NCBI RefSeq assembly: GCF_000009045.1
Contig: NC_000964.3
Span: 4,151,607 to 4,215,606, forward strand
DNA from: Bacillus subtilis subsp. subtilis str. 168
GTDB lineage: Bacteria > Bacillota > Bacilli > Bacillales > Bacillaceae
Reading direction: 5' to 3'
Length of the DNA: 64,000 nt
The notes below the pieces were generated by a model. The model was given only the letters and a program-made list of their open reading frames with translations, did no database searches and was not told the origin of the DNA. Positions 5,325 to 28,771 of the stretch are shown here, one piece after another (positions within the stretch are counted from its first letter, which is position 1; the number at the start of each line of letters is the position of its first letter). Made by a program: the position numbers and the translations under genes.

Positions 5325-5744
5325 TCACTTGCCTGATATCCCTTTTGAATTCATAAAAACGATCCGCCAGCCGTCCGGGTCCTCTATCGTCACGCCCCCA
5401 TTGCTCCAGTACGGGTTCTCTGATTCGACCTCTTGATAGCCCATGTGCTTTAGCTTTGAAGTGATCGCTGCCAGTTCAACTGCATTCGGCACATAAAAAA
5501 CAAGAAGGCTGTCGGGATGGGGAACGGGGGCAGTGCTTCCCCCTTCATACTGGGTGAATTCCAAATGATAATCGGCATGAGGAAGGCCGAACATGACACC
5601 GTCATACCCGTTATGCTGTGAAAATTCTCCTATTCGTTTCAAACACAGTCCCTCTTCGTAAAAACGAATAATCTCATCAAGCTGGCCCGTAGGACGCGCA
5701 ATTCGGATTTGTGCTGCTTGAAAAGACGAAAAACGTTTTCCCAT
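5325..5744 (-). CDS. yycE: VOC/glyoxalase-family protein
   Basis: MGKRFSS start with GGAG RBS; DPDGWRIVF C-terminal VOC motif. Confidence 0.85.
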   Translation of the reverse strand: MGKRFSSFQAAQIRIARPTGQLDEIIRFYEEGLCLKRIGEFSQHNGYDGVMFGLPHADYHLEFTQYEGGSTAPVPHPDSLLVFYVPNAVELAAITSKLKHMGYQEVESENPYWSNGGVTIEDPDGWRIVFMNSKGISGK

Positions 5745-5834
5745 ATTGTTACCATCTCCTTTTTGCACCATTTTATTAAAACGCTTTCAATTTTTCATCC
5801 GCTGAGCGAACGTCATTTCTTCCATCTTTCGAAT

Positions 5835-5865
5835 GAAAAAAACCCCAAGAGCAGCTCTTGGGGCT
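5835..5865 (-). terminator. Terminator after dnaC
   Basis: ccccaagag-cag-ctcttgggg stem with A-run on plus (U-run on minus). Confidence 0.8.
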
Positions 5866-7229: not shown

Positions 7230-7398
7230 GCTAAGCACCGTCCTCTCATTAAAAAATCTCCAACCTCCATTCTACCATTTCTACAGAAAAAAAATAGAAA
7301 AATTGTCTGTTTCCTGTTTTTTTCAGTTAGCAGATTGGATCGTTTCGGACAGTAACAAGGCGGGAAAAATGCAATAAAACATAAGGGAGGAATGAAAG

Positions 7399-7599
7399 AT
7401 GATAAAGAAATATGCGATTACACCTAATGTTGATGCGGACGGCTGGTTTATTGAGGTGGAGAATGTAGCGCCGACAGCTTTGTATACGTCTAAAGACGCC
7501 GCTATTGAAAAGGCCAAACAGGTGGCTAAGGAAAACAGTCCGTCTAAGCTTGTAATTTATGACCAGTTTAAAAATGTGGAAGAAGAACACTCATTTTAA
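7399..7599 (+). CDS. yycD: Small conserved protein (DUF2188-like)
   Basis: 66 aa; strong RBS gggaggaatg; ends in a terminator hairpin. Confidence 0.8.
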   Translation: MIKKYAITPNVDADGWFIEVENVAPTALYTSKDAAIEKAKQVAKENSPSKLVIYDQFKNVEEEHSF

Positions 7600-7646
7600 T
7601 GAATGAAAGCCTTCGCTGCAGCGAGGGTTTTTTAGCGGTTATCGGT

Positions 7647-11554: not shown

Positions 11555-11588
11555 AAAAAGAGGCTTGGATGAATCCAAGCCTCTTTTC
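11553..11588. terminator. Bidirectional terminator yycA/rplI
   Basis: aaaagaggcttggat-ga-atccaagcctctttt perfect stem. Confidence 0.85.
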
Positions 11589-11590
11589 TA

Positions 11591-12040
11591 TTAAGCTTCT
11601 TCTTTTACATGTACCTTTAACACAGCCTGCACTTCAGGATGCAGCTTCACAGGCACGTTTGTATATCCTAATGCACGAATGCCGTCCGGCAGTTCAAGCT
11701 TCCGCTTATCTACTTTAATGTTATGGTCTTTTTGGAGCTGTTCAGTGATTTGCTTGCTTGTCACTGAACCAAATAAACGGCCGCCCTCACCTGATTTTGC
11801 GCTAAGCTCAACAGTCAGTTTTTCTAATGTCTCTTTCAAGCTCTTAGCCTGCTCAAGCTCAGCAATGGCTTCTTTTTTCTCTTTCTGCTTTTGTCCGTTT
11901 AACGCGCTGATGTTTGACGCGTTCGCTTCAACCGCGAGGCCTTTTTTAATTAGAAAGTTATGCGCATAACCGTCTGCTACGTTTTTGACTTCGCCTTTTT
12001 TTCCTTTTCCTTTTACATCTTGTAAGAAAATAACCTTCAT
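11591..12040 (-). CDS. rplI: 50S ribosomal protein L9
   Basis: [31 protein letters not shown]. Confidence 0.99.
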
Positions 12041-14016
12041 CTCTGTACGCCTCCCTCAAAATACTCATCTATGGCGTGCTTCAGCCGTTCCAGCGCTTCA
12101 GAAACTGAAATGCCGGACAACTGAGTCGCCGCATTTGTTAAATGCCCTCCGCCTTCCAGGGCCTCCATGATGATCTGAACATTTACCTCGCCAAGCGACC
12201 GAGCACTGATACAAACCGTTTGTTCATCCCGTCTCGCCACCGCAAATGAAGCCTCAACCTCACTCATCGATAGCAGCGAATCGGCAGCCTGCGCAATCAG
12301 CACTTGATCGAAGTATTCCTCTTCATTTTCAGGAAGAGAAGCAATCGCAATGTTATCTTTATAGAGGACCGTATGCTGGATCAGCTTCGCCCGTTTAATA
12401 TAGGAATCAACGGTTTCTTTCAGAAACTTCTGCACCAGCACCGTGTCGGCGCCTTTTGCCCTTAAATAAGAAGCCGCATCGAAAGTCCGCGAGCCCGTGC
12501 GGAGAGAAAAGCTCTTTGTATCCACTATTATACCAGCTAATAGGGCTGTTGCTTCAATCATATTGATTTTTAAGCGCTTCGGCTGATATTCAAGCAGCTC
12601 TGTCACCAATTCCGCTGTGGAAGAAGCGTATGGTTCCATATAAACGAGCAGCGGATCTCTGATAAACTCCTCACCTCTTCGGTGATGGTCGATGACCACG
12701 ATATGTTCAATTTTATTGACCAGCCGTTCCTCCATGACGAGTGACGGCTTATGTGTATCAACGATCACAAGCAGTGTGTCATCATTGGAAATCTCCATTG
12801 CTTCTTCAGGCGTAATAAATCTTGACCACAGTTCTTCATATTTTTTGATTTCCCCAATCAAACGCTGCACACTTGATCCGATTTGGTTTGGGTCAATCAC
12901 GATAAAACCATCTTTGTTATTTGCCTGAGCCACCTTTAAAATCCCGATCGCTGCGCCGATAGAATCCATGTCGGGGAATTTATGCCCCATGATAATCACA
13001 TTGCTGCTTTCGGTGACGATTTCCTTTAAGGCGTGAGAAATCACGCGGGCCCGCACCCTTGTTCGTTTCTCCATTGGGTTTGTTTTACCGCCGTAAAACT
13101 TCACCTTGCCGTTTGGCAGCTTAATGGCTACCTGGTCTCCGCCGCGTCCCAGTGCTAAGTCCAAGCTGGATTGCGCCAAATCGCCAAGTTCTTTCAGGGA
13201 AGAGACTGAAGCCCCGACACCGACGCTTAACGTCAGCGCTACACCGTCAAACGAGGTTTTTTCCCGCACTTCATCAAGAATCGAAAACTTCGAATTTTCG
13301 AGTTCAGTTAAGATATGTTCATTAAGTACAGCAATAAAGCGTTCTGAAGACGTCCTTTTCAAGAAGATCCCGTACTCCTGCGCCCAAGCGTTCAGCAAAG
13401 ATGTCACCTGGCTGTTCATCGTGCTTCTCGTCTGGTCATCCAATCCTTGTGTCACATCATCATAGTTATCAAGGAAAATATATGCCAGGACGGTTCTTTC
13501 GTTTTCATATAGCTTTTCAATCTGGATTTGTTCTGTTACATCAAAGAAATATAAGAGACGCTCATCCCGTTTGATGACAACCCTAAACTTGCGGTCATTC
13601 AATGTAACCGTTTCCGATTCCACCTCTTGTTTGATAAGCGGCACTACCGATTCACAAGTATCGTAAAGTGATCTCCCCACTAAAGTGCTTTCATTAAAAC
13701 AAGAGGAAAGAAACGGATTTGCCCATTCTATATAATATTGGTCATTAAAAAGCATGATTCCAATCGGCATTTCCATCAATGCCTCTTCACCGACTTTTTT
13801 CAACCTGTAGGACAACGTAGAAATATAAGCATCAATCTCTTGTCGAATAAGAGAATCAGCACGCTTAATAAAAAACAAAATAACTGCCAGCAGCAGCACT
13901 TCGACGGTTCCTAATATCCAGTTAAAATAAAAGCTGATGAGGATTGTAATAATTGACAGAGCAATCAATGCATAGATGGGATACCGAAACAGCGGTTTTT
14001 CATAAAAGCTTGGCAT
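12037..14016 (-). CDS. gdpP: c-di-AMP phosphodiesterase GdpP
   Basis: 2 TM, PAS, degenerate GGDEF (GGDQV), DHH (VVIDHHRR), DHHA1 (GGGHLTNAA). Confidence 0.97.
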
Positions 14017-15986: not shown

Positions 15987-16015
15987 AACAAGCAGCAAAG
16001 GAGTTCCCTTTGCTG

Positions 16016-16393
16016 CTATTTCTGCTGATCCTTCACTAAGCCGTTCGAACGATAAGATTCCAGCACGTCTCTGTTGGATTCTCCCCATTCTTTCATTTGC
16101 AAAACAATCGGTTCAAGCGTGCGCCCAAATTCCGTCAGAGAGTACTCTACCTTGGGCGGCACCTGGTGATAAACCTCACGGTGCACGATGCCGTCCGCTT
16201 CCAGCTCCCTCAGCTGGAGAGTAAGCATTCTTTGAGTAATACTCGGGCAGATTCGCCGAAACTCATTAAATCGTTTCTTGCCATCTATCATGTGATAAAA
16301 AAGAATTCCTTTCCACTTTCCGCCAATGACATCTAGAGTGAATTCAACTGGACAGCCTTCTTTGTTCGGGTATATATTCTTTTTTTCACTCAT
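16016..16393 (-). CDS. hypR: HxlR/MarR-DUF24 redox-sensing regulator HypR
   Basis: GCPVEFTLDVIGGKWK, ITQRMLTLQLRELE, VPPKVEYSLT. Confidence 0.9.
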   Translation of the reverse strand: MSEKKNIYPNKEGCPVEFTLDVIGGKWKGILFYHMIDGKKRFNEFRRICPSITQRMLTLQLRELEADGIVHREVYHQVPPKVEYSLTEFGRTLEPIVLQMKEWGESNRDVLESYRSNGLVKDQQK

Positions 16394-16597
16394 TCTTGAC
16401 CCTCCAATAGTACCTTTTTTGATACTACATTACATTTTGCAACTAATCTACCCAGTATTTTACACACCTTTTCTCCTTAGCTCAAAGAAAATGCTTCTTA
16501 TTCACATCAATTTTTAAGGGTTTGCATGATTACACCTGCAGCAAGACGTGTTAAACTATATAAAGATTACACTACTTAAAAAAGGATAGGAGCTATC

Positions 16598-17527
16598 ATG
16601 GAAAAGATACTTATTTTCGGACACCAAAACCCAGATACAGATACGATTTGTTCTGCGATTGCTTATGCTGATTTGAAAAACAAACTCGGCTTCAATGCTG
16701 AGCCTGTCCGCCTCGGACAAGTCAACGGCGAAACACAATACGCGCTTGACTATTTCAAACAAGAAAGCCCGCGTCTTGTTGAAACAGCTGCAAACGAAGT
16801 AAACGGCGTTATCCTGGTTGACCATAACGAACGCCAGCAAAGCATCAAAGACATTGAAGAGGTTCAGGTTTTAGAGGTTATCGACCATCACCGCATCGCT
16901 AACTTTGAAACAGCTGAGCCGCTTTACTATCGTGCTGAGCCTGTAGGCTGTACGGCTACCATCTTAAACAAAATGTACAAAGAGAATAACGTGAAAATCG
17001 AGAAAGAAATTGCCGGCCTTATGCTGTCTGCGATCATTTCTGATTCCCTGTTATTTAAATCTCCAACTTGCACGGACCAAGACGTAGCAGCAGCAAAAGA
17101 GCTTGCGGAGATCGCTGGAGTAGATGCTGAAGAATACGGCTTGAACATGTTGAAAGCAGGCGCTGATCTAAGCAAAAAAACAGTGGAAGAGCTCATTTCT
17201 CTTGATGCGAAAGAATTTACACTCGGCAGCAAGAAAGTCGAAATCGCACAAGTAAACACAGTGGACATTGAAGATGTAAAAAAACGCCAAGCTGAATTAG
17301 AAGCTGTGATCTCAAAAGTTGTGGCTGAGAAGAATCTTGATCTGTTCCTTCTCGTTATCACAGATATCTTAGAAAATGATTCACTTGCTCTTGCAATCGG
17401 TAACGAAGCAGCGAAAGTGGAAAAAGCGTTCAACGTTACATTAGAAAACAACACAGCCCTCTTAAAAGGCGTTGTTTCCCGTAAAAAACAAGTCGTTCCT
17501 GTCTTAACAGACGCAATGGCTGAATAA
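16598..17527 (+). CDS. ppaC: Mn-dependent inorganic pyrophosphatase (family II)
   Basis: [27 protein letters not shown] motifs. Confidence 0.98.
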
Positions 17528-17529
17528 GC

Positions 17530-17558
17530 AAAAAGCATCCCGCGTCGGGATGCTTTTT
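17530..17558. terminator. Bidirectional terminator ppaC/yybP
   Basis: aaaaagcatccc-gcgtc-gggatgcttttt. Confidence 0.85.
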
Positions 17559-17559
17559 C

Positions 17560-18021
17560 TTATTCACCCAGCTTCTCAATTTGTCCCATCACATCAGTAA
17601 TTTGCTTTGCGTTTTGGACCAGGTCTGACTGCTCCAATTCTTTAAGCGATACCTTGCCTTCCTCGGCTTGTTTCAACACATCTTCAGCGCTTTTCTGCAA
17701 GGTTTCGTTATGCTCCTGAATGGTTCGATGAATCTCCGCTGCGGCATCAGGCGGCGTTAATTCATTAAAATCAGCGGCAGCCTTCTGAATCGACTCAAGC
17801 TGCGCTTCAAGTTTTTCTTTCGCCTCGGTGTCATTTACAGCTTTCTCAGCCAATTCAGGCGCTTCCTCTGCAAATGTCTTCACCTTCTCCACATAACCAG
17901 CTGCTTCACTCGTATAGTTCAATCCGTCGTTCACCTGATCAAGCATGCCGCATCCGCCTGCACTCAAAAGTCCCACTCCGGCAAGTACTGTCAAAATGAT
18001 CTTCATCTTCAGCCCCCTCAT
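17560..18021 (-). CDS. yybP: Lipoprotein YybP (start 18021 or 18006)
   Basis: Signal peptide with lipobox-like LSAGGC; ATGA overlap with the upstream 36-aa ORF. Confidence 0.85.
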   Translation of the reverse strand: MRGLKMKIILTVLAGVGLLSAGGCGMLDQVNDGLNYTSEAAGYVEKVKTFAEEAPELAEKAVNDTEAKEKLEAQLESIQKAAADFNELTPPDAAAEIHRTIQEHNETLQKSAEDVLKQAEEGKVSLKELEQSDLVQNAKQITDVMGQIEKLGE

Positions 18022-18128
18022 CGTTTCTTTTTCATTTTTTCTTTTAAGATCGGAATCAATTTCTCTTTCGCTAACGGCAGCCCTTTCCTCACCAATTCAC
18101 GCTTCAGCCACTTTTTCAGCTTAGACAT
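18018..18128 (-). CDS. 36-aa highly basic peptide downstream of the Mn riboswitch
   Basis: RBS gggagaggag then ATG 18128: MSKLKKWLKRELVRKGLPLAKEKLIPILKEKMKKKR*; the 115-aa ORF-track extension runs through the riboswitch and is spurious. Confidence 0.65.
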   Translation of the reverse strand: MSKLKKWLKRELVRKGLPLAKEKLIPILKEKMKKKR

Positions 18129-18160
18129 TCTGATGCTCCTCTCCCTTTTTGATAAAAATG

Positions 18161-18187
18161 AAAAAACTCCACCAATTTGGTGAAGTT
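18161..18187 (-). terminator. Riboswitch expression-platform terminator
   Basis: cttcacca-aat-tggtggag plus U-run on the minus strand; upstream atttggtgaag (18203-18213) can pair with the 5' arm as antiterminator. Confidence 0.8.
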
Positions 18188-18219
18188 CCTGAAACAAAAA
18201 GACCTTCACCAAATCAGAT

Positions 18220-18314
18220 TTGGCAAAGGTCTCGCTAACAATGAGATTGCCAGCAAAGCCGAGGACACCTTGTCCCGTAATGACGACTTTACTGTGAAAG
18301 CTACTCCCCTTTGG
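18220..18314 (-). ncRNA. yybP-ykoY (Mn2+-sensing) riboswitch aptamer
   Basis: Minus strand reads CCAAAGGGGAGTAGC...GTCGTCATTACG...GTTAGCGAGACCTTTGCC, the yybP-ykoY motif, upstream of yybP. Confidence 0.88.
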
Positions 18315-18438
18315 AGTGTTCATTTTTATTACTTTCATTCTAAAGCACCGATCTGTTCCAGTCAAATTCCTGCCGTTTATATAAAAGCGCGCTGTGGTAT
18401 TTAAAATTTGAATGGTTTTTCTATCAGGAGATCATGCT

Positions 18439-19746
18439 ATGACAGAGGAGGTTTTCATCATGAGTCAAGAGCGCGTGAAACGGCCTGGGCATACCAGATG
18501 GTACATATCTTCGTTACTTAGCGGCATTATTATTCTTAATTATTTTGACCGAGTGGCCATCTCGGTAGCGGCCCCTGCGATACAAGATTCGTTTCACCTT
18601 ACTGCAACTGAACTCGGCATCGTGTTTTCCATTTACACCTATTCCTATACACTGATGCAGCTGCCTGTCGGAAGTTTGCTGGACCGTTTTGGGGTCGCAT
18701 GGGTCACGAGGGTTGGAATGACAATATGGAGCTTTTTAACGATCCTTCTTGCTTTTTTGCAAGGAAAATTGCTGTTGTATCTGTTCCGGTTTCTCATTGG
18801 GCTGACGAGCGCCTCTGCGTTCCCTGCTGCCTCTAAAGCAACCGCTCTCTGGTTTCCTCCAAGTGAGCGGGGATTGGCAAACTCACTGTTCGATTCGGCC
18901 GCCAAGTTTTCAAATGTAATCGGCGCGCCATTGGTCGCCTTTCTTGTCACAACATTTGACTGGCGTGTCGCTTTTTTGACGATTGGATGCATCAATGTGC
19001 TGTTTACGATCTTTTTCTGGCAGTATTATGAACAGCCTGAACGGCACAAACGCATTTCTAAAAGTGAACTAAACTATATTCAAAAACACAATGCCATTAC
19101 AACAGAGCAAATCCCTTACAAAACGGGCCCGCTTTTAAAAAAGCTTTTCACCAATCGAAAAGTATGGGGCTTAATGATCGGATTTACAGGGTACGGGTAT
19201 ACATTCAACCTGCTGCTCACCTGGCTTCCGACTTTCTTTAAACATACATACGGTATGGATCTCATGTCGTCCGGTTTATTTACGGCAGTGCCGTGGCTGA
19301 TCTCAACCATTTCCGGAATTGCCGTCGGCGGCTGGCTCGTCGATTATTTTATTAAGAAAGGCTATCCTAATACCAAGGTGTACCGAACCGTAATCATAGT
19401 CGGAATGAGCTTTGGCTTTTTCTTTTTAGGATCCATTCTGACGAACAATATTACCGTAGCCATTATTTGCATTTCCATCGGACTCGCCGGAATTTCCGCA
19501 ACCGCTCCGGTCGGCTGGTCCATCTCCGCAGAACTCGCGCCGATCGGTTCCGTATCCATGCTGAGCTCCATGGTGAATCTCGCAAACAACCTGTTCGGAG
19601 GCATTATTGCTGCGTCACTGACAGGGTATTTGTTTGATGTGACAGGCTCCTTTACCCTCAGCTTTCTGGTAGCTGGTTTTGTGCTGTTGCTGGGATTGGT
19701 TTTTTATGTGTTTGTATTAGGGGATGTAAAACGAATTAAACTATAG
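18439..19746 (+). CDS. yybO: MFS transporter, anion:cation symporter (ACS) family
   Basis: INYFDRVAISVA motif, WFPPSERGLA, ~12 TM; 435 aa from ATG 18439. Confidence 0.9.
   Translation: MTEEVFIMSQERVKRPGHTRWYISSLLSGIIILNYFDRVAISVAAPAIQDSFHLTATELGIVFSIYTYSYTLMQLPVGSLLDRFGVAWVTRVGMTIWSFLTILLAFLQGKLLLYLFRFLIGLTSASAFPAASKATALWFPPSERGLANSLFDSAAKFSNVIGAPLVAFLVTTFDWRVAFLTIGCINVLFTIFFWQYYEQPERHKRISKSELNYIQKHNAITTEQIPYKTGPLLKKLFTNRKVWGLMIGFTGYGYTFNLLLTWLPTFFKHTYGMDLMSSGLFTAVPWLISTISGIAVGGWLVDYFIKKGYPNTKVYRTVIIVGMSFGFFFLGSILTNNITVAIICISIGLAGISATAPVGWSISAELAPIGSVSMLSSMVNLANNLFGGIIAASLTGYLFDVTGSFTLSFLVAGFVLLLGLVFYVFVLGDVKRIKL
19514..19740 (+). repeat. yybO 3'-end repeat, copy 1 (within the intact gene)
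   Basis: Aligns to 20248-20475 and, for its last ~170 nt, to 25076-25240. Confidence 0.95.
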
Positions 19747-19789
19747 AACATGAAAAAGAGAGCTGCCAGTTGGCAGCTCTCCCTTTACA

Positions 19790-20029
19790 TCAAAGAATCG
19801 GCCCGTCCCCATTTACCTTCTCCTCGTCCTGTTCCTCTATATCAAGCCCCGAAGCTAGCATTTCCTGCTCTATCTGTTCGAGCACCTGCTCGTTTTTTCC
19901 TTGAAGACCACCTTCATAATGAAAAGCATCCTGTGTGCCGTTTTCCTCTATTGTCGCTAAAATATCGTGGATATCATTATGGTCTCCTGAAATGGAGCCG
20001 AATCCCTGGTTTTGTTTTTTATAATTCAC
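19790..20029 (-). pseudogene. Acidic ORF, probably the 3' remnant of a gene truncated at the 20073 junction
   Basis: Frame is open back to 20086 with no good RBS/start; [35 protein letters not shown] then an Asp/Glu-rich tail. Confidence 0.45.
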
Positions 20030-20073
20030 AAAACCGCTGGGGAGGTTGTTTCCGAGGTTTACACATGATGCGC

Positions 20074-20201
20074 TCCGAGTAGTAATTCATCAGTGTATCA
20101 AAATCTTCATTTTGGATTGCCACATCACATGCAGAGATGATGTCTTTCAATTGCTGTTCCAAATGAATTCCCCTAATCATCATGATTGGATATATTATAC
20201 A
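20074..20201 (-). pseudogene. Duplicate of the yybH upstream region and first 30 codons
   Basis: 128 bp colinear with 26451-26578; reads [30 protein letters not shown] then diverges and stops at 20019. Confidence 0.92.
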
Positions 20202-20247
20202 ATGTTTGACACGTAGGGATCCTTTTCATTTTTGTTTTTACGGTTTC

Positions 20248-20495
20248 GCTGGTCCATTTCCGCAGAGCTGGCGCCGATCGGTTCCGTATCCATGCTGAGC
20301 TCCATGGTAAATCTGGCAAACAACCTGTTCGAAGGCATTATTGCGGCTTCATTGACGGGGTATTTTGTTTGATGTGACAAGGCTCCTTTACGCTCAGCTT
20401 TCTGGTAGCCAGTTTTGTTCTGCTGCTTGGATTGGTTTTTTACGTGTTTGTCTTAGGGGATGTAAAACGAATTAAGCGGGAATAAAGAGTGCTTG
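20248..20495 (+). pseudogene. yybO 3'-end repeat, copy 2 (two 1-nt insertions)
   Basis: WSISAELAPIGSVSMLSSMVNLANNLF...GDVKRIKRE*; tail ggaataaagagtgcttg shared with copy 3. Confidence 0.95.
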
Positions 20496-21175
20496 TAGAG
20501 AAAACGTTGTTCTTTCTACAAGCTTTTTAGTTTTGTGCTGTTTTTCAAGATATTCAGCTGTCATAAAAAGAAAATGAGCTCCCACATACCGGCTAGGTAT
20601 GTGGCGTTCTTCTTCATGTTCTGGCATGCAGCTGTGAGGAGGATTTGTTTGCTCACCCCCTGAACCTGCGATAGCTAAGCCCGTGCAGTTGTTTTGAACC
20701 TACAAAGCTTCGTTCTATTTTTTCTTTTCTTTTTTTAGAGATTTCCTGAAATAGAAAAGCAATCTTTTCTAACCTTTTCTTTATGGTTTTGCCATACATA
20801 CCGAGTAACGACTTTCTGGCGTTTCGTTGATTTTGTGTAATATTCTCAAACATATTTCAGGATTTGATTTATATGACCGATAGTCTTTGCGATCAATTGT
20901 TGAGTACGTAAGTGTATGCTGATTCAACAAATGTATCTGTATTGTTCACTTTATAATGAAATTTCCATTTTGGAAGCAAACCCCTGACTGGGTGATAACG
21001 TCTATGTGCGATGGCACCAAAAACTTGGAGGTCAAATAGTCCTTTAGAGATGAGAGTTGTTAAGTAGCCGGAATCTAGAGCGACGGCTTCTACTTGAAAA
21101 TCAAATCATGCAATTTAGTGATCCAATCGGTCAAGGTAGGGCTTGGAACAGAATCATGGACTTTTCTGGAGTTGC
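20491..21175 (-). mobile_element. Degenerate IS1182-family transposase remnant
   Basis: Across frameshifts and stops the minus strand reads VHDSVP, FQVEAVALDSGYLTT, AHRRYHP.RGLLPKWKF, IERSF..SKQLHGL.Y.RFRG, ILLTAACQNMKK; end hairpin gcttgtagagaaaacgttgttctttctacaagc at 20491-20523. Confidence 0.85.
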
Positions 21176-21507
21176 AAACTATTAATCGTCCTCATTAAAT
21201 TTATAATAAAAATATTCTCAATTGAGCAAATCGCCCACCCTTTTTCCTTTATAACATAAAATCCAATACTATCAATAAAATTCTTTACAGGTTATTACAG
21301 TTAAGATATAATATAGTTAATCTTTTACGTAAAAGGAGGTTTTTATTACTTGTGTTGAAGTTTTAAATAGGAGTAACTCCATCTCCCCATTACGGTCTTC
21401 ATTTAATTTCATCCTGAGTTTTATTTAGTTAGATATAAAAACGAAAATTTCACATTATTTTTAACTAACCGATAGTATAAAATATATATTGAAAGGATTG
21501 TAAAATT

Positions 21508-21945
21508 ATGAATAAATTCCTGAAGAGCAATTTCCGTTTCCTTCTTGCGGCTGCTTTAGGCATATCATTACTTGCTAGTAGTAATTTTATAAAAGCCAGC
21601 AATGATAACTATAAATTCCATTTACTTGTACCTTATGGCTATGGTAATGCCTATTCAAATGATGCATTTAGACAGACCACTCATACAGATAATCCTTGGA
21701 AAGTAAATTTACAGAAATCGGCAGAAGGTAAAGGTACAATCATGACATTTTGGTTGATTAACACAGGGAATAGTAAAATTCCAAAAGCTTCTAAAATACA
21801 TAACGTAAAACAAGGAAGCGGAGCTCATTATTATCATGCAAATAGCCAGGGAAGCCATACATATGTAGCCTTAGCAGTTGAAAACAACAATTACAGTGCA
21901 AGTTCTTATGGTATAGATGGTGTATGGGATGAAGAAACTTGGTAA
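21508..21945 (+). CDS. yybN: Secreted protein YybN (DUF2712-like)
   Basis: 145 aa; Sec-type signal ([25 protein letters not shown]...IKA); gaaagga RBS; AT-rich. Confidence 0.85.
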
Positions 21946-22058
21946 ACAAGAACCTTCTAAAAACGTTGGCACCTTTTAGCCACGCGAAAAAATTTAGAAT
22001 GATAATCTTTTTATAAGATTATCATTTTTATTTATTCTATTAAGAATTGAGTGAGAAC

Positions 22059-22814
22059 ATGGAAAGTCATATTTATCGCATTATCAAAAATAAATTAACT
22101 ATAATAATATTTACTATAATCATATTAATTCCTTGTGTTGATATATCACTATTGTTAATGACTAACACAGAATACCATCCTGCATATGCGTTTTTCCTTT
22201 CTGGCACTTCCGTAGGGCATGCTTCACAAATGATCCTATTATGGTTTCTTCCGCTTTATTTTTTGTTACTATGTGCTGACGATTCTATACAAGATTATAA
22301 AACAGGATATCATTACATTCTTATAAGCAAAGTTGGCAGAAAAAAATATTGTTTGGAAAAAATATTTACCTCTTTTATCATTTCATTTTTGACAATGTTT
22401 TTGTCACTAATATTAAACTTTTTATTGGTTCAGGTTTTCTTTTTTAAAGGTACATTTAAAAATGACTTAGACCAAATTAAATTCCCTGATAACAGCCTTT
22501 ATACTTTTAGTATGGCCCATCCTTATATAGCAATTGTGTTATTTTCTATTATTTGTTGTATTATGTCTGGATTTGTTGGAGCACTTGGTTCAAGCCTCAG
22601 TTTACTTTTTCGTGATAAGAAGTATGCCTACCCAGCAAGTTTTTTTATTTGGTTCGTACTTATACTAAAAAACAAATCATTAATGTTTTTATTCCAACCG
22701 TTTACAGAATACGGTTATAATGTACTTCTCCCTATCCTATGTTTGTCTATCTTTATTTTTCTAATAATAATTTCTAGTATTGTTTTATATGAGGCAAAAT
22801 ACAATGAAAATTAA
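22059..22814 (+). CDS. yybM: Membrane protein (ABC permease-like)
   Basis: ~6 TM segments, [11 protein letters not shown] loop; AT-rich; likely start MESHIY. Confidence 0.82.
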
Positions 22815-23514
22815 AAGACTACTATTAATTTTATGTTTACTACTATTTTTAGTTACTTTATGGTTCAACCAGAACCACACTTATCTTGGAAAGAATTCTA
22901 TCGCGTCATTACTATATATGAATAATAGTACATTCGGATATAGTTCAATATTTGCATATACCTTGTTTTATATTGTCCCGTTTCTTATGTTACTTAGTAA
23001 CTTTTTTCATTCAGAAAACCCCTACAAAGTAATGAGGATGGTTAAGCGTAAAAATTACTACAAGTCTAAAATTATGGAGATTGGGTTTGTTTCTTTACTT
23101 TTTTCTTCAATACATACTGTTATTAATATTACGTGTACACATATTTTCTTTAGTAAAAACTTGTTGGTCGAAGCAAACTTTTTATCAATTTGTTTATTAA
23201 ACATGATTAGTTTAGTGTTTTTCTACTTATCAGTAGGTATTATGTTTAGACTTACATACGATCTGTTTAATTCAGTAGCATTAGCAATTTTTATTGTGTA
23301 TATAATTTTAGATAGCTTGTATTTCGGCGTTAAATTATTACTTCCTAATGGATATTGGGAACCCTTTAGAGACTTGGCTATATTCACAAATATGCTCAAT
23401 AGATATTGGTCAACTTCAAATCTTATAATAGTTTATATTAGACAGATAATAATAGTTTTTATTTTTTATTTAGTTGGATCTTCAATTTTTTTGAATAAGG
23501 ATTATAAAAAATGA
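22804..23514 (+). CDS. yybL: Membrane protein (ABC permease-like)
   Basis: MKIKRLL start overlaps the yybM end; ~6 TM. Confidence 0.82.
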
Positions 23515-24266
23515 GGATTAAAGGCTTTTTCATAACTTTAGTTGCGATAATATTTCAGGCGTCATTATCGAGTTATAATAATAATAAAAATGTCTTTCCT
23601 TTTTTAGATGGCATACCAATAAGCACCTCGGGTCATTATGAGTATCAAAATATTTTATTGTGGTTTGTACCTATTGTTTCCCTAAGTTTTTGTTTCTCTG
23701 GGAGTATTAGAGATACATACATTTCGTATGAGCAATTAAAGTTAGTAAGAGAACATAGTAGAGTTAAATGGGTAACATCTCAATTCTTAATAATTACAGT
23801 TGTACTTTTAATCTTTACTTTATCTCAGATTGCTATATTTTATATTTATTCACTTGTATCTCTTCATAACCTTGATATTAATTCCGTTATCAATAAAAGA
23901 TTTGTTATGATGACACTCATGTATTATCTAACCTTACTTAACTTATTTAGTTTTCAATTATTTATGGAGCTTTATTATAAATCTCAAATAGCACAATTAA
24001 ATATAAGCGTTTATATTATTTTTTCGTTAATTTTAGCAAAGAAGTTAGTGCAATTAAATTCTCCGAAAGTTATTCACTACTTTTTAATTCCAAACTACAG
24101 TAATGGATTAAGAACTGGGTTAAGCTATTATTCCCAATCTGGAACTGCTATTATTGAACCATTATTAGGTTTGTTTATTATAATCATTTTACAGATTTCA
24201 ATAGTTATATTATCTGTCTTAAAGTTCAAAAAAATAGATATGCTAAAAAGTGAGGGCTTACAATGA
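23511..24266 (+). CDS. yybK: Membrane protein (ABC permease-like, DUF2705-like)
   Basis: ATGA-type overlap with yybL; ~6 TM. Confidence 0.82.
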
Positions 24267-24919
24267 TTGAGGTATTAAACCTAACAAAAAAAATTAAAAA
24301 GACTACAGTTTTAGATAATATCTCTTATACATTTGAAAAAGGAACAATTTATGGACTATTTGGGAGTAATGGTTCTGGAAAGACCATGCTACTTCGTGCA
24401 TTATCCGGGTTAATAGTCCCTACTGAAGGGAGTATAACTATTAAAGGTGAACAATTACATAAAGATATCTCTTTTCCTAAAAGTGTAGGATTAATTATAG
24501 AAAATATGCAGTTACTTCCTCAGTATGATGCTTTTACTAACCTTAAAATTTTGTCAAAAATTAAAAAGATCGCATCAGATAATGATATATTAGATTCTAT
24601 TAGTAGAGTTGGTTTGGAAAATTTTAATAGTGTAAAGGTTAGTAAATTCTCGTTAGGAATGAAACAACGATTAAATATTGCACAGGCTATTTTTGAAAAA
24701 CCTGATATATTGCTACTTGATGAACCAACAAATGCGATTGATGAAAAAGGAGTTGCATTTGTTCATGACATTCTTTTACAAGAGAAAAAAAGGGGAGCTA
24801 CCATTATTATTACTAGTCATCACAAGGAAGATATTATATCTTTATGTGACATTGCATTAGAAATGAATCATGGACGTCTAGAAACTTCAGAAAAAGTAAT
24901 ATATAAGAAAGATAGTTAG
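24263..24919 (+). CDS. yybJ: ABC transporter ATP-binding protein
   Basis: Walker A GSNGSGKT, signature FSLGMKQR, Walker B LLLDEP, H-loop TSHH. Confidence 0.95.
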   Translation: MIEVLNLTKKIKKTTVLDNISYTFEKGTIYGLFGSNGSGKTMLLRALSGLIVPTEGSITIKGEQLHKDISFPKSVGLIIENMQLLPQYDAFTNLKILSKIKKIASDNDILDSISRVGLENFNSVKVSKFSLGMKQRLNIAQAIFEKPDILLLDEPTNAIDEKGVAFVHDILLQEKKRGATIIITSHHKEDIISLCDIALEMNHGRLETSEKVIYKKDS

Positions 24920-25075
24920 TTTAAACTGGCTATTTCTTATCCAATGATAGACTGCAGACAAGTTCAACTGCTGTAATGCTAGAAAATCCAATGAAATGCT
25001 GATAATTGCGAAGAGATATGATCAGTCAGAAAACAAATCTTAAAAAGAAAAAGTAAATTCATCAATATTTCTAAT

Positions 25076-25258
25076 AAACCTGGCAAACAACCTGTTCGGA
25101 GGCATTATAGCTACTTCACTGACGGGATATTTATTTGATGTGACAGGCTCCTTACGCTCAGCTTTCTGGTGCCGGTTTTGTGTTGTTGCTGGGATTGGTT
25201 TTTTATGTGTTTGTATTAGGGGATGTAAAACGAATTAAACTGGAATAAAGAGTGCTTG
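25076..25258 (+). pseudogene. yybO 3'-end repeat, copy 3 (two 1-nt deletions), running into the terminator
   Basis: NLANNLFGGII...VLGDVKRIKLE*. Confidence 0.93.
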
Positions 25259-25276
25259 CTGAAAAGCACTCTTTTT
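25247..25276. terminator. Terminator between yybO copy 3 and yybI
   Basis: aaagagtgctt-gctgaa-aagcactcttttt. Confidence 0.85.
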
Positions 25277-25293
25277 CTGCATCGAAAGAATAC

Positions 25294-26082
25294 TTAAGAT
25301 AAGTCACTCCCAAAAATCGTAACAGTCTGACGGTTAAACATAAACCTCTGCCCGTTCCATTTTAATACGGTTTGAACATATCCCAATGAGTCGGCGTTAT
25401 ACCTTCCCGCTATCCGCTGGTACGCCAATAATTCGTATACGCCGTCTCTGTCAAAATCAACCGGATACAAGCCCGATAAAGGATTCACCCATCCTTCTAT
25501 CGGCATTTTTAACACACCTTGGCTGTTATAAATCTCATTCAAATATTCCCTGCCCTTGTAAGTAAGGTCGAGGATATACGTTTCGTTTTGCTGATGACTG
25601 ATAACGCTCGCTTTATATTGATTTTGATACCTCACACTGTACTTTAATTCATCATTCAATACATCTGAATTGAAAATTCGCCGGAACTGCCTGTTTAGAT
25701 AGGCAAACACATATGCATAAATAGCACCGCCGCTTCCCCCTGTGTCCATTACTACTGCCACATCCTCAATCTTGTCGCCTGTCATATCCCCCAGAAAAAG
25801 TGACGGATTGTATCCCATATTGTTTTGAAGCTGAATCCGCTGCTCCTGATGGGTTCTGCCATCACGGATCACCAATGTGATATTTCTCCATAACGGGCTG
25901 CCGGGCATTTGATTTCCAGTTAGAAAGACCTCGTCAATAACGCCGTCTCCCGTTACATCGCCGCGGGTAGATACAATGATTGCACGTGAGGAGACAGGCT
26001 GCCGAAATACGTATGGATGTTGAACAAGTCCTCTGCCTTCATAAAACCAATAAGGAGCCATTCTGATGTCATACACATTCAA
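25294..26082 (-). CDS. yybI: Spore coat-associated protein with DxxGDG(VCBS-like) repeats
   Basis: TTG start after gggaagg; GDVTGDGVID, GDMTGDKIED, VDFDRDGVYE; sigma-E-like -10 catataat at 26116-26123. Confidence 0.85.
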   Translation of the reverse strand: MNVYDIRMAPYWFYEGRGLVQHPYVFRQPVSSRAIIVSTRGDVTGDGVIDEVFLTGNQMPGSPLWRNITLVIRDGRTHQEQRIQLQNNMGYNPSLFLGDMTGDKIEDVAVVMDTGGSGGAIYAYVFAYLNRQFRRIFNSDVLNDELKYSVRYQNQYKASVISHQQNETYILDLTYKGREYLNEIYNSQGVLKMPIEGWVNPLSGLYPVDFDRDGVYELLAYQRIAGRYNADSLGYVQTVLKWNGQRFMFNRQTVTIFGSDLS

Positions 26083-26149
26083 TTGTGTCACCTTCCCTAA
26101 TCAGCTGAATGAATCATTATATGCAGGAATGGCACATCAAAGACATATC

Positions 26150-26539
26150 TTACACACCAATTAAATCCGTACCATATGAATTATCAATTACACAAAGCCA
26201 CTCGCCTTGCGCATTCTTTTTAAATACATAGGTCGCCCTTCTTTCCATCGCATACTCGGAGTCCTTTTTATCCGAATCAAGCAGTGTCTGAGAAAGAACG
26301 AGTACCGTGTCACCTGCTTCCAACAGGATCATTTTCCCTTGTGTCGGGACAATATGATGATTGAAATAGTTCGCAATCGTGATAAACGCTTTTTTGATTT
26401 CTTCCTTGCCTCGCGCGATCATGCCCGGCTTCACAACTAAAACGGCATCTTCCGAATAATAATTCATCAGTGTATCAAAATCTTCATTTTGGATTGCCAA
26501 ATCACACGCAGAGATGATGTCTTTCAATTGCTGTTCCAA
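26150..26539 (-). CDS. yybH: SnoaL/NTF2-like protein (DUF4440)
   Basis: 129 aa from TTG 26539; [18 protein letters not shown]. Confidence 0.85.
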
Positions 26540-26684
26540 ATGAATTCCCCCAATCATCATGATTGGATATATTATACATCGCTAGACCACTGAAACCTTG
26601 AAAACAAAATGAAAAGTATCCTTTTTTCCTATATAATCAAATAGATATATTTAACAAAGTACCCAAGTGAAGGGGTGAACATTA

Positions 26685-27524
26685 TTGTCTGCGGAAGTAA
26701 CGTTACATGACAATATACATTATGATTTAAGTGCGGATTGCCAGCACTGTTTTGGCCTGTGCTGTGTCGCCTTGCCTTATGCGAAGTCGGCAGATTTTGC
26801 TTTTGATAAAGACGGGGGCACGCCTTGCCGCAACTTACAATCAAACTATCAATGTTCTATACATAAAGATCTCAGAGAAAAAGGATTTCGAGGCTGCTCT
26901 GCATATGAATGCTTTGGCGCCGGCCAAAAAGTATCCCAAATCACTTATGAGGGAAAGGATTGGCGAAACAGCCCCGAAACGGCCAACCAGATGTTTGACG
27001 TTTTTCCTATCATGCAGCAGCTGCACGAAATGCTCTGGTATTTACATGAAGCTCTTTCTATAGATATAGCCAAGCCGATTCATTCTGAACTGAGAACCAC
27101 TTTCGAAAAAATAGAAAGGCTCACCAGACTCAGCAAAGAACGCTTGCTGACACTGCAGGTGGACGAGCATCGAGCTGAGGTCAATGAATGGCTGTTAAAA
27201 ACAAGTGAACTGGTGCGTGCCCAAGCCCGCCATCCAAAACTCCCGAAAAAGGTCAGCCGGGGAAGTGTCCTGATCGGCGCGAAACTGAAAGGGCTTGATC
27301 TGCGAGGAGCAAATCTAAGAGGGGCGCTGCTCATAGCCGCCGATCTGAGAAATGCCGATTTGAGAATGACAGACTTTATCGGTGCAGATATGAGAGACGC
27401 TGATCTCAGCGGCGCCGACCTGACCGGGAGCATCTTTTTGACACAGGCACAGGTGAACGCCGCCAACGGCGATTCGAATACAAAGCTGCCGCTGTCTGTA
27501 CGAACCCCTGCCCATTGGAAATAA
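26685..27524 (+). CDS. yybG: Cys-rich N-terminus plus C-terminal pentapeptide repeats
   Basis: DCQHCFGLCC...C...C.IH...GC..YEC; LKGLDLRGANLRGALLIAADLRNADLRMTDFIGADMRDADLSGADL. Confidence 0.88.
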   Translation: MSAEVTLHDNIHYDLSADCQHCFGLCCVALPYAKSADFAFDKDGGTPCRNLQSNYQCSIHKDLREKGFRGCSAYECFGAGQKVSQITYEGKDWRNSPETANQMFDVFPIMQQLHEMLWYLHEALSIDIAKPIHSELRTTFEKIERLTRLSKERLLTLQVDEHRAEVNEWLLKTSELVRAQARHPKLPKKVSRGSVLIGAKLKGLDLRGANLRGALLIAADLRNADLRMTDFIGADMRDADLSGADLTGSIFLTQAQVNAANGDSNTKLPLSVRTPAHWK

Positions 27525-27556
27525 AAAAGGACCCGCTAACGGTCCTTTTTTACTGA

Positions 27557-28771
27557 TCAATTCAATCCTTTTTCGTTCCTCTTATCCGGCATTTTCACAC
27601 TTCTTGCCAAGTATCCCGACAGCCATAACGCAACCAGCAGCATGAAGGTGATCATACCGACGACGCCCAGCCAGTGAAAACCAGACCAGAATAGCCCTCC
27701 GATTGTTCCGAAAACACTTGAACCGGCGTAATAAAAGAACAAATACAGCGATGAAGCCTGTGCTTTGTTGTGAAGGGCTCTCCTGCCCACCCAGCTGCTG
27801 GCAACTGAATGCCCTCCGAAAAAACCGAATGTAAAGAGGGCAATCCCCAGAATTTTCACTGCCAGCATATTGTTTATCGTAAATAACGCACCTGCAATGA
27901 CGATGAAAATATTCATCACCAATATTTTCGGATAGCCATACCGATCAACCATTCTTCCAATGAAAGACGAGCTGAAAATGCCTACAATCATCACAATAAA
28001 GATCCAGCTGGAAAATGCTTTATTAAGCGAATACGGCGGGCCCAACAGCACATACACAATGTAATTAAACAAGGCAACATTGCTTCCAAGCAGCAAAAAA
28101 CCAATGAGAAACAAGCTGAATAGTTTACGGTCCCTCAAGTGGCCGATCAGAGACATTCCCAATTTCCCGAGCTTCAATTTTCTTGGCGTAAAATGCCTGG
28201 ATGGCGGCAAATTTATAAAAAATATAACACTAGCAATCAAACTAATGACACCAATTGTCCCCATCGCCATATGCCAATTCAAGTACTCGCTCAGGAGCCC
28301 GGAAACGATCCTTCCGAAAACGGCGCCGATTGCATTTCCGCTGATATATAGCCCCATCGCTGATCCAAGACTTCCGGGTTCAATTTCTTCCCCAAGATAA
28401 GCCATCGCAATCGACGGAAGGCCTGCGAGCGCAACGCCTTGAATGGTTCTCAATACGAGCAGTGTATGAAAGCTCGGACTAAAGGCCGATGCCAGACAGA
28501 GAACCGATGCGGCCAGCATGGAAATACCCATAATAGGCTTGCGTCCCCACACCTCGGATAATGAACCAAAGACAAGCATGCTCACAGCTAACAGCATTGT
28601 GGTAACAGATAAAGAAAGACTCGCCGCAGTAGGCGTTACATGAAATTCCCGCGTGAATTCCTCCATGAGCGGCTGTACGCAATATAGAATCGCAAATGTA
28701 TTGAAACCCGCAGCGAAGAAAGCAAACGTAATTTTTCGAAAAACCGGTGTGCCTTTTCGAATGTATGTCAT
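27557..28771 (-). CDS. yybF: MFS transporter (YnfM-like)
   Basis: 404 aa; FAILYCVQPL, GSLSEVWGRK. Confidence 0.88.
   Translation of the reverse strand: MTYIRKGTPVFRKITFAFFAAGFNTFAILYCVQPLMEEFTREFHVTPTAASLSLSVTTMLLAVSMLVFGSLSEVWGRKPIMGISMLAASVLCLASAFSPSFHTLLVLRTIQGVALAGLPSIAMAYLGEEIEPGSLGSAMGLYISGNAIGAVFGRIVSGLLSEYLNWHMAMGTIGVISLIASVIFFINLPPSRHFTPRKLKLGKLGMSLIGHLRDRKLFSLFLIGFLLLGSNVALFNYIVYVLLGPPYSLNKAFSSWIFIVMIVGIFSSSFIGRMVDRYGYPKILVMNIFIVIAGALFTINNMLAVKILGIALFTFGFFGGHSVASSWVGRRALHNKAQASSLYLFFYYAGSSVFGTIGGLFWSGFHWLGVVGMITFMLLVALWLSGYLARSVKMPDKRNEKGLN

Follow-up and report, generated by a model that had tools for sequence, protein, structure and literature searches.

Genomic islands that target tRNA genes carry a replacement gene end in their attachment site, and in integrative islands at gene 3' ends (tRNA/tmRNA type) the restored gene end and the displaced partial end form direct repeats. 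The yybO region of the 64,000-nt stretch of the Bacillus subtilis 168 chromosome analysed here (the window) is alike in this respect: direct repeats of the target gene end surround an insert, with the gene restored on one side, both in B. inaquosorum (locus L023, repeats of 208 bp) and in the window (copies 2 and 3 of the yybO end, described below). It differs in that no recombinase was found here, the repeats are long and later diverged, and the position of the join varies; the crossover point was not reused, the two joins lying at the equivalents of yybO positions 19514 and 19576. The locus also resembles replacement-type flexible genomic islands, in which alternative, non-homologous gene sets are exchanged by homologous recombination between conserved flanks and are polymorphic within a species: three alternative contents occur between the conserved yybO and yybH/yybG, polymorphism is found within species and identity breaks sharply at the cassette edges. 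Unlike in such islands, however, the cassettes of the window are stacked, with truncated flank copies between them, and not cleanly swapped.

A further comparison is with homology-facilitated illegitimate recombination (de Vries & Wackernagel 2002; Prudhomme 2002; Meier & Wackernagel 2003, all as cited in PMC6382021). Integration during transformation in which one end is homologous and the other is joined illegitimately is known from several naturally transformable species and has been discussed for B. subtilis (PMC6382021); according to the same paper, which reports very short integrated segments, the classical form with long heterologous DNA is undescribed for this species. Our locus would share with this process one homologous end, and it does share another join with an overlap of 0-4 nt, a net gain of foreign DNA and a competent species. 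Novel joints with a few-base overlap on one side are present (AAC, 3 nt, in one; about 2-4 nt plus a 35-nt inverted patch in the other). The process is here deduced from natural end products only, and kb-scale additions are unshown experimentally in B. subtilis (PMC6382021).

The AT-rich island of this locus, yybNMLKJ, is itself previously known. The yybN region is of low GC content, has a postulated horizontal origin and is bound by Rok over >5 kb, and yybN and yybM-L-K are listed as Rok targets (Smits & Grossman 2010, PMC2978689); YybJKL is listed merely as an ABC exporter (PMC11466899). The Rok-bound AT-rich region of strain 168 described there and the island analysed here are one and the same; the AT-richness was computed here and the Rok binding is taken from the paper, which makes no mention of the yybO repeats, the fragment of yybH, the stump of the gerP cassette or the insertion sequence remnant (PMC2978689).

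Three yybO ends and their origin

Intact yybO (18439..19746, + strand; an open reading frame, called as a gene in the identical locus L020) encodes an MFS transporter of 435 aa ending in KRIKL* (MFS_1 domain match in a profile search, E = 1.8e-57). The initial annotation had reported that its 3' end is present three times, and pairwise alignment and BLAST (E-values of 1e-62 to 1e-64 among the yybO ends, far beyond chance) bear this out. Copy 1 (19514..19742, +) belongs to the intact gene, and copy 2 (20248..20485, +, ending KRIKRE*) and copy 3 (25077..25248, +, ending KRIKLE*) are pseudogene fragments. Positions 19514-19739 and 20248-20475 are identical at 208 of 226 sites (92.0%), 19576-19742 and 25077-25241 at 154 of 165 (93.3%), and copies 2 and 3 share 88.4% identity. 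As annotated, copy 2 has two 1-nt insertions relative to intact yybO, which are placed at 20363 and 20379, and copy 3 has two 1-nt deletions, located after 25151 and after 25170; likewise, the motif agagtgcttg directly follows the stop of both fragments, whereas intact yybO is followed by a different terminator hairpin (19753-19786). A recount of codon changes gave the same result for copy 3 (10 synonymous, 1 non-synonymous); for copy 2 the 17 synonymous changes stand, and the non-synonymous ones number three (G>E, G>S and the final L>R) instead of two, the R/L difference having been given separately before.

About 29% of changes are expected to be synonymous under random substitution, and the observed excess has P = 3e-7 for copy 2 and P = 4e-5 for copy 3. 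Because their differences are nearly all synonymous, copies 2 and 3 must have diverged while they still served as functional gene ends elsewhere, in other lineages, and not as duplicates decaying in place. Up to its last codon, copy 1 shares 99.1-100% identity with the yybO of B. subtilis L026-L032, L040, L041, L044 and L045. Copy 2 is 88-93% identical to all yybO compared (the best being B. spizizenii TU-B-10, 93%), and copy 3 is 91-93% identical to B. subtilis yybO ends and closest to B. inaquosorum (95-96%). By these identities, copy 1 is the native B. subtilis end, and copies 2 and 3 are foreign alleles that came in with imported DNA. Copy 3 is therefore not the ancestral end of the 168 lineage, as had been proposed for it together with its terminator. 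Its frameshifts form a series, with no deletion in L023, one in L040 and L041, and two in L044, L045 and the window.

The tract between native yybO and native yybI

The tract opens (19743..19789) with the last codon, the stop and the two-way terminator hairpin of an alternative 'Type 2' allele; this segment is cassette-specific, with continuous homology only to the Type 2 carriers L004, L021, L022 and L033. In the genomes compared, the KRIKL* end with its own terminator was found solely alongside an alternative gerP-like/Hsp20 cassette, which B. tequilensis and some B. stercoris carry instead of yybI; only the last codon, stop and terminator of yybO belong to that cassette. There follows (19790..20073, - strand) what is left of a GerPA/F-like gene, namely its 3' two-thirds; the gene is the final one of a six-gene gerP-like/Hsp20 operon that is present in full in the same four carriers. 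The remnant matches L021 and L033, both loci of the B. stercoris type, at 98.8-99.1% identity, and in comparison with L033, 2260 bp (10637-12896) are absent at window position 20073/20074. The 19747-20247 block matches the intact stercoris-type cassette at the same 98.8-99.1%, but the adjacent yybO reaches only 95%, with a sharp break at about 19750.

Next to the stump lies a second duplicated gene, absent from the initial annotation: codons 1-37 of yybH with the start codon at 20183 and a leader of about 30 nt (20074..20213, -). Positions 20074-20201 match the yybH 5' end and leader at 26451-26578 with 96% identity, and the duplicate is 97.8-98.5% identical to stercoris-type yybH. The join to copy 2 is formed by an inverted piece of about 35 nt from the yybH-yybG spacer (20214..20247, a reverse-complement match), which is 97% identical to L015 and L033 and 84% to window positions 26585-26621; the functional yybH and spacer, with the source sequences of these duplicated and inverted pieces, lie at 26150..26621 (-). 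What had been read as a simple insert at 19747-20247 supplying a new yybO end is the stump of a deleted six-gene cassette, a partial yybH duplicate and a 35-nt inversion.

Copy 2 is followed, after agagtgcttg and within the loop of its terminator hairpin, by a truncated and degenerate IS1182-family element (20491..21166, -) comprising one end and the 3' ~575 nt of the transposase gene, i.e., the 3' ~675 bp of the element. Aligned with the 3' part of an intact annotated IS1182-family element on plasmid NZ_CP032858, the remnant shows 79.5% identity; unlike members of that family it is truncated, lacks the second terminal end and an open frame for the DDE transposase, and is immobile because only one end is left. 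In L019 and L027 the same IS end is flanked by duplicated hairpins, and its position in the terminator loop of copy 2, like these hairpin targets, indicates a probably independent later hit on the hairpin. The element had been regarded as part of a delivered yybNMLKJ block; however, island-bearing loci with two yybO ends carry no IS, which would have landed in the hairpin of copy 2 and been truncated later.

The island proper (21172..25076, +, including a 156-nt tail) contains yybN (21508-21945), yybM (22059-22814), yybL (22804-23514), yybK (23511-24266) and yybJ (24263-24919), with GC of 0.23-0.35 across 21250-25000 versus 0.41-0.50 in the flanks; for the island between the yybO copies GC is put at 25-31%. 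Its proteins belong to DUF2712, DUF2705, WxPxxD membrane protein and ABC ATPase families; no integrase, transposase or defence-system signature was detected in the five ORFs (Pfam, NCBIfam, PADLOC) or, by six-frame reading, in the non-coding left part of the island in L023, and neither revealed a recombinase. Homologous islands occupy the same site in L023, L040, L041, L044 and L045. The junction with copy 3, TTTCTAATAAAC joined to CTGGCAAAC with the 3-nt overlap AAC, is identical in the window, L023 and L044 and is likewise carried by L040, L041 and L045, and the 208-bp repeats around the island of L023 are 97.6% identical. Positions 4200-7600 of the L044 island differ by ~1% from L023 and by ~10% from the window, and downstream of ~7600, in yybK, the relation is reversed, which shows two haplotypes about 10% apart that apparently circulate and recombine.

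Beyond copy 3 stands a complete yybO-type terminator hairpin shared with yybI (25249..25277, read from the sequence), which matches L040-L045 at 100% and L003 and L023 at 95% identity. The adjoining yybI 3' end (25294..25400, -) differs from merR-type B. subtilis at 13-16 sites per 90 nt, and divergence falls to ~1% from 25400 onward; this is taken as a foreign gene end and the right edge of the imported tract. Copy 3 is thus likely to have entered together with the island and ~100 nt of foreign yybI 3' end. Altogether, these comparisons show a putatively foreign tract of 5.66 kb, from 19743 to ~25400, between native yybO and native yybI/yybH. The breakpoints between foreign and native sequence (the yybO stop at ~19742 and ~25400 in yybI), like that between haplotypes in yybK, are not tied to a given illegitimate joint.

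Variants of the locus in related bacilli

Island-free B. subtilis and most relatives have a merR-like gene between yybO and yybI. In a two-copy form, found in B. inaquosorum L023 and in true B. subtilis (L040, L041, L044, L045), intact yybO is followed by the island, copy 3, the terminator and yybI, and the 19747-20247 block is absent. The empty site expected by the initial annotation, i.e., yybO ending KRIKLE* and running straight into a copy-3-type terminator and yybI, exists in B. inaquosorum KCTC 13429 (L003), Bacillus sp. N13C7 (L001) and B. spizizenii DV1-B-1 (L016); this site, which lacks merR, may be a secondary loss via recombination between the repeats. B. subtilis is polymorphic for merR-type (L026-L032, L036-L039), two-copy island type (L040-L045) and 168-type loci, and B. 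stercoris for merR plus yybI (L015) and the gerP cassette (L021, L033). Sampling was thin, with one genome per species plus exact-protein look-ups. We think it rather probable that the yybO-yybH/yybG interval is a hot spot of cassette exchange in the B. subtilis species complex, with at least three alternative contents: a merR-like gene with yybI, the yybNMLKJ island with yybI, and the six-gene gerP-like/Hsp20 sporulation operon without yybI. Since the two-copy forms lack the 19747-20247 block, the proposed sequential addition holds in its order (the island before the block), while the IS is to be separated from the island and the block is no simple insert. Between the two-copy and three-copy forms within B. 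subtilis, the direction of change is ambiguous.

Probable assembly of the nested tract

The 168-type locus would be a nested composite into which cassettes from related bacilli recombined one after another. We consider it probable that this happened by successive recombination with DNA of related lineages, presumably through transformation, one end being homologous and the other joined illegitimately; this mechanism is inferred, as it is read from end products only. In each event, one side would have been resolved by homology in the flanking gene and the other closed by an illegitimate join at the level of microhomology inside the flanking gene, so that DNA was added and not replaced, and a truncated copy of the flank was left. 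In the first event, the island tail was joined to yybO at the equivalent of 19576, as the shared junction shows, giving a repeat of the last 171 nt of yybO plus terminator on either side of the island; copy 3 is its right-hand member and would have travelled with the island into B. subtilis. In the second, the yybH leader/spacer of a gerP-cassette allele may have been joined, via the inverted patch, to yybO (19514 equivalent) in a lineage with copy 2 as its functional yybO end, the structure being observed and the mechanism conjectural. The order and host of this second event are not fixed, because among one genome per species and the exact-protein look-ups we found neither a lineage with copy 2 as a working yybO end nor an intact gerP cassette followed by the copy 2 join. 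Later decay would include insertion of the IS1182-family element, its truncation together with the left edge of the island, the loss of 2.26 kb from the gerP cassette and the frameshifts in copies 2 and 3. No site-specific recombinase would have been involved in the build-up. The microhomology at the joins (0-4 nt) is too short by itself to discriminate between mechanisms.

Other routes to such a structure have to be weighed against this one. A tandem duplication from yybO codon ~360 to the yybH-yybG spacer, arising by unequal crossing-over or transformation-triggered merodiploidy, with the allele of one copy replaced by ordinary homologous recombination and deletions thereafter, would predict a single novel joint, and the join at 20201-20254 does link the end of such a segment (yybH leader/spacer) to its start (yybO 19514); the short inverted patch fits duplication by template switching, and merodiploids can arise through transformation (PMC3784515). 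However, the two copies hold different cassettes and alleles, and therefore extra replacement events are needed; the yybH fragment is closer to the stercoris type (98.5%) than to the resident gene (96%), and so is the spacer piece (97% versus 84%). Copy 3, with its junction at a different yybO position, is left unexplained, and we regard this route as unlikely. Duplication of the resident yybO end in place, followed by pseudogene decay, is in line with the frameshifts of both fragments, but 85-90% of the differences are synonymous (P down to 3e-7), copy 1 resembles conspecific alleles while copies 2 and 3 stand at between-species distance, and the copy 3 junction is common to B. inaquosorum, so that this explanation is essentially refuted.

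If the island and the 19747-20247 block were integrative elements inserted site-specifically into the yybO 3' end and carrying replacement gene ends, the same topology would result: the insert would lie between direct repeats, with the intact gene at one edge and a displaced, partial 3' end at the other. We hold this to be very improbable: neither the window nor the better-preserved versions in L023 and L044 contain an integrase or recombinase, the 208-bp repeat spans the whole terminator, the two joins lie at different yybO positions, the block is a chromosomal cassette bounded by yybH and no element, and a distant homologue of the operon in B. velezensis is found at another locus without repeats. 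More improbable still is that the island was brought in by an IS1182-family element, acting as a composite or one-ended transposon, which also made the repeats. In its favour, copy 2 and the island have the remnant exactly between them; yet both island and repeats occur without any IS in two-copy strains and in B. inaquosorum, only a single IS end is present, and this end sits in a terminator loop, as it does at the intact copies in L019 and L027.

Returning to successive recombination with one-sided joins, it is conceivable, though we put it forward tentatively, that the last 171 nt of yybO with the terminator serve as a portable homology arm by which the island is moved or lost precisely and cassettes are stacked. 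If so, transformation would carry the yybNMLKJ island from one species of the B. subtilis complex to another, recombination from repeat to repeat would remove it precisely and leave merR-less 'empty' sites, and the arm combined with one-sided illegitimate joining would let cassettes stack. The locus would then preserve, in a natural and datable form, how B. subtilis has added genes by transformation. The locus offers a natural worked example of how a competent soil bacterium may stack foreign cassettes at one site without mobile-element machinery: intermediates (island-free, two-copy and three-copy) survive in sequenced relatives, and the stepwise frameshifts of copy 3 and the near-exclusively synonymous divergence of the displaced ends provide an internal clock. 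The nested yybO ends are nevertheless an instructive yet ordinary genome scar that leaves general principles unchanged.

For the annotation of 168-type genomes, 19790-20485 and 25077-25248 are gene fragments (gerP-like, yybH', yybO' and yybO'), 20491-21166 is an IS1182-family remnant, and the small ORFs called in these regions (79, 61, 54 and 51 aa) are by-products. Those who use the yybN region as a Rok target may take the foreign tract as extending over the 19743 to ~25400 interval.

Native and foreign yybO ends

The region is the yybP-yybO...yybI-yybH-yybG neighbourhood of B. subtilis, with 100% identity to the complete B. subtilis genome L020 (CP127089), and an exact-protein look-up placed the unchanged YybN protein on more than 1000 contigs. 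The intact MFS transporter gene yybO (18439-19746) has its last 229 nt repeated twice elsewhere, with BLAST E-values of 1e-62 to 1e-64: copy 2 matches at 20248-20475 (92.0% identity; 1-nt insertions at 20363 and 20379) and copy 3 at 25077-25241 (93.3% identity; 1-nt deletions after 25151 and 25170). The alignments bear out the triplication described in the initial annotation, together with its codon counts, its AT-rich tract between the repeats (GC 0.23-0.35 over 21250-25000 vs 0.41-0.50 outside) and its different gene ends: KRIKRE* closes copy 2 and KRIKLE* copy 3, both followed by agagtgcttg, whereas the working yybO ends in KRIKL* and then a different hairpin (19753-19786). Against intact yybO, copy 2 carries 17 synonymous and 3 non-synonymous changes and copy 3 carries 10 and 1 (P = 3e-7 and 4e-5 for the synonymous excess, with about 29% of random substitutions being synonymous). 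This strong bias shows that the divergence of copies 2 and 3 took place in other lineages, where both served as working gene ends; their loss of function is recent.

The proposal that copy 3 is the ancestral end was contradicted by the comparison with other strains. Copy 1, the end of the intact gene (19514-19742), is 99.1-100% identical to the yybO ends of all B. subtilis strains compared, up to the last codon, while copy 3 reaches only 91-93% with B. subtilis yybO and is closest to B. inaquosorum (95-96%), and copy 2 shows 88-93% identity to every yybO compared; only such nearest-neighbour identities are usable, a maximum-likelihood tree of the shared 167 nt placing copies 1-3 in an unresolved comb. 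Copies 2 and 3 are thus foreign. No lineage with a still-functional copy 2 was found: no compared yybO exceeded 93% identity to it, the KRIKRE ending was absent from 15 of 15 yybO cluster members, protein look-ups did not recover it, and a metagenome scan contained zero full-length yybO with copy-2-type bases. On the right-hand side, yybI shows 13-16 differences per 90 nt over its first ~100 nt (25294-25400) from B. subtilis strains carrying a merR-like gene at this site, and about 1% beyond. Judged by the near-identity of copy 1 and this drop in divergence, the window is native B. subtilis as far as 19742 and from ~25400 onward, and the 5.66 kb in between form a mosaic of foreign pieces, comprising a stercoris-like cassette stump, copy 2, an insertion sequence (IS) remnant, an island haplotype and the inaquosorum-like copy 3.

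A cassette stump and an IS1182-family remnant

A repeat search revealed a second duplicated gene that the initial annotation had overlooked: 20074-20201 matches 26451-26578, which is yybH codons 1-37 plus leader, with 96% identity. The adjoining piece of the yybH-yybG spacer (20214-20247, 35 nt) lies in inverted orientation and resembles the B. stercoris sequence (97% identity) more closely than the spacer of the window itself (84%). To the left, a 79-codon ORF (19790-20029, minus strand) is the 3' part of a 131-aa B. tequilensis gene (L004); alone it gave zero Pfam or NCBIfam matches, and it was identified solely via the full-length gene and GerPA-annotated relatives, the gerPA/gerPF Pfam family being found in some relatives of the 131-aa protein. 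In B. tequilensis the gene is the last of a six-gene minus-strand operon that lies between yybO and yybH and replaces yybI, and whose products also include one protein of Hsp20 type and another that is gerPA-like; this gerP cassette is intact in L021, L022, L033 and L035 as well. Identity to the stercoris-type cassette is 98.8-99.1% over 19747-20073 of the window and 97.8-98.5% over the yybH fragment, whereas the adjoining yybO is only 95% identical to stercoris-type loci, with a sharp break at ~19750; relative to L033, 2260 bp are absent at 20073/20074, with an overlap of at most 2 nt at the break. This near-full identity, the sharp break and the 2260-bp loss show that the block at 19747-20247 is not the added insert proposed initially but the deleted stump of an alternative chromosomal cassette with its right-hand flank, here the yybH fragment and inverted spacer; of the working yybO, the cassette contributes only the last codon, stop and terminator.

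Within 20019-20213 (minus strand), the orphan yybH fragment retains its leader and start codon and runs into the gerP-like stump, giving a 54-codon chimeric ORF. The 79-, 61- and 51-aa ORFs called by gene callers in the scar region of L020 are probably spurious. The start codon of yybH lies within reach of a perfect 7-bp palindrome, CCAATCATCATGATTGG (26550-26566), which overlaps it and is preserved in the duplicated fragment at ~20173-20189. Two of the cassette loci, L033 and L035 (GCA_003052465.1 and Logan runs), are labelled B. subtilis; their flanks reach only 94-97% identity with the window and correspond to B. stercoris loci, and the label is probably outdated.

The IS1182-family remnant (20491-21166, minus strand) matches an IS1182-family element with 79.5% identity over its non-coding terminus and the final ~575 nt of its transposase gene, and the same end sequence opens two intact copies located elsewhere (L019, L027), each with a duplicated hairpin as flank. 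In the window the IS end begins within the loop of the copy 2 terminator: where copy 3 reads agagtgcttGCTGAAaagcactct, copy 2 has agagtgcttg and then the IS directly. The inner part of the IS and whatever adjoined it on the right are absent, and homology of the island to other strains restarts at 21172. From its position in the loop and the missing inner part, the IS was an independent later hit on the hairpin followed by deletion, and did not arrive with the delivered block, as had been suggested. Both intact copies have a short terminator-like palindrome on both sides (L019, 1776-1800 and 3255-3400; L027, 541-565 and 2020-2160), which suggests that this element targets hairpins and duplicates them. 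In another B. subtilis strain (L028, 10664-11853), the region of the merR-like gene holds an IS3-family element with rve domains; the short yybO-yybI interval has therefore been struck by different insertion sequences.

The island and its site in related strains

The island between copies 2 and 3 (21172-25076) encodes YybN (DUF2712; signal-peptide-like N-terminus), the DUF2705 membrane proteins YybM and YybK, the WxPxxD-family membrane protein YybL and the ABC ATPase YybJ, which is nearest to lantibiotic-protection ATPases but below the family cut-off and showed only generic ATPase similarity in PADLOC. YybJ2KL appears as a type V exporter of unknown function in a structural survey (PMC11466899), and the yybN region is already known to be bound by Rok and is presumed to be of horizontal origin (PMC2978689). 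B. velezensis has a distant version of the yybN-J operon (67-75% nucleotide identity; YybK 47% amino acid identity), which lies at an unrelated locus, adjoins a fragment of an IS3-type transposase and lacks flanking repeats (L024, 687-4121; L025, 587-4021).

We scanned one genome per species and added further strains via exact-protein look-ups; as no B. subtilis representative came out of the scan, the conspecific strains came from such look-ups and longest contigs only, and arrangement frequencies are therefore not estimates. Besides the gerP cassette, three arrangements occurred in this sample. In the merR type, yybO (KRIKLE*) is followed by a terminator, a merR-like gene, yybI, yybH and yybG; it is present in B. 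stercoris L015, B. spizizenii TU-B-10, B. rugosus and B. halotolerans (partly decayed), and in true B. subtilis (L026-L029, L031, L032; flanks 99.1-99.5% identical to the window), and L036-L039 share this gene order. The two-copy island type has intact yybO, terminator, ~0.7 kb of non-coding DNA, island, copy 3, terminator and yybI, and is found in B. inaquosorum L023 (208-bp repeats, 97.6% identical; the 657-bp non-coding left part gave no plasmid match and no readable frame) and in true B. subtilis (L040, L041, L044, L045). The third, yybO-terminator-yybI without merR, is the empty site predicted initially, and it does exist in B. inaquosorum KCTC 13429 (L003), Bacillus sp. N13C7 (L001) and B. 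spizizenii DV1-B-1 (L016). However, because ~35-70 nt after the left repeat of two-copy strains match the merR-side flank of other species, such sites may have arisen secondarily, when the repeats recombined with each other, and may not be the ancestral state. Look-ups of YybN and a YybK variant gave only the three-copy arrangement of strain 168.

The junction of island tail and copy 3, ...TTTCTAATAAAC|CTGGCAAAC, with 3 nt common to yybO, is the same in the window and in all two-copy loci, and this join therefore formed once. Deletions are absent from the L023 copy 3, whereas L040 and L041 have one there and L044, L045 and the window have two. The window's island haplotype differs by ~10% from that common to L023 and L044 (mutual divergence ~1%), and the breakpoint between haplotypes falls in yybK. 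The 156-nt non-coding tail after yybJ (24920-25075; L023, 10407-10563; L044, 8658-8814) is 98.7-99.4% identical between haplotypes and species, although the same haplotypes diverge by 5-12% immediately upstream of it and by ~5% immediately downstream; the tail may be a conserved element, or it may merely belong to a recombination tract.

On a larger scale, rpsR-ssb-rpsF follow yybO almost directly in the B. licheniformis group (L008-L012: B. haynesii, B. paralicheniformis, B. glycinifermentans, B. sonorensis), and B. swezeyi (L010) has other genes there; the whole yybN-yyaX-type stretch downstream of B. subtilis yybO is variable as well.

Assembly of the mosaic

The pieces are nested, so that the nested additions proposed initially were broadly right, while four points had to be revised: which end is ancestral, what the 19747-20247 block is, what part the IS played and which state of the site came first. 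The homologous breakpoints are multiple, and the island is free of recombinases (Pfam, NCBIfam and PADLOC scans; frame reading of the left part in L023). Each stacking event probably involved a homologous crossover on one side and an illegitimate join in the opposite flank, a pattern known from transformable bacteria as homology-facilitated illegitimate recombination (work cited in PMC6382021). The strongest competing explanation is that the segment from the yybO 3' end to the yybH 5' end was duplicated in tandem and that another allele then replaced one of the copies; such a duplication could come from transformation-triggered merodiploidy (PMC3784515), and the spacer-to-yybO joint with its 35-nt inversion is compatible with it and also with stacking by illegitimate join. 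The two-copy B. subtilis form may be the precursor of the three-copy form, or may instead descend from it through the import of an inaquosorum-type island half. Integrase-mediated insertion, IS-mediated delivery and in-place duplication followed by decay fit poorly or are contradicted.

The phenomenon is of known kinds, namely a flexible island where recombination is frequent (a hot spot), scars made of gene fragments and the remnant of an IS, in a well-studied genome whose island had already been reported as foreign; among the titles and abstracts listed, no publication on the repeated yybO ends was found. A promoter-like scan did not exceed shuffled expectation (35 found vs 33.7 expected), and Rfam at curated thresholds gave nothing in 16000-28000. 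The Mn2+ (yybP-ykoY) riboswitch upstream of yybP (18173-18321, minus strand) scores 26.9 bits against RF00080 (gathering score 45; E = 1.8e-5) and escapes the curated threshold, although yybP names the family.
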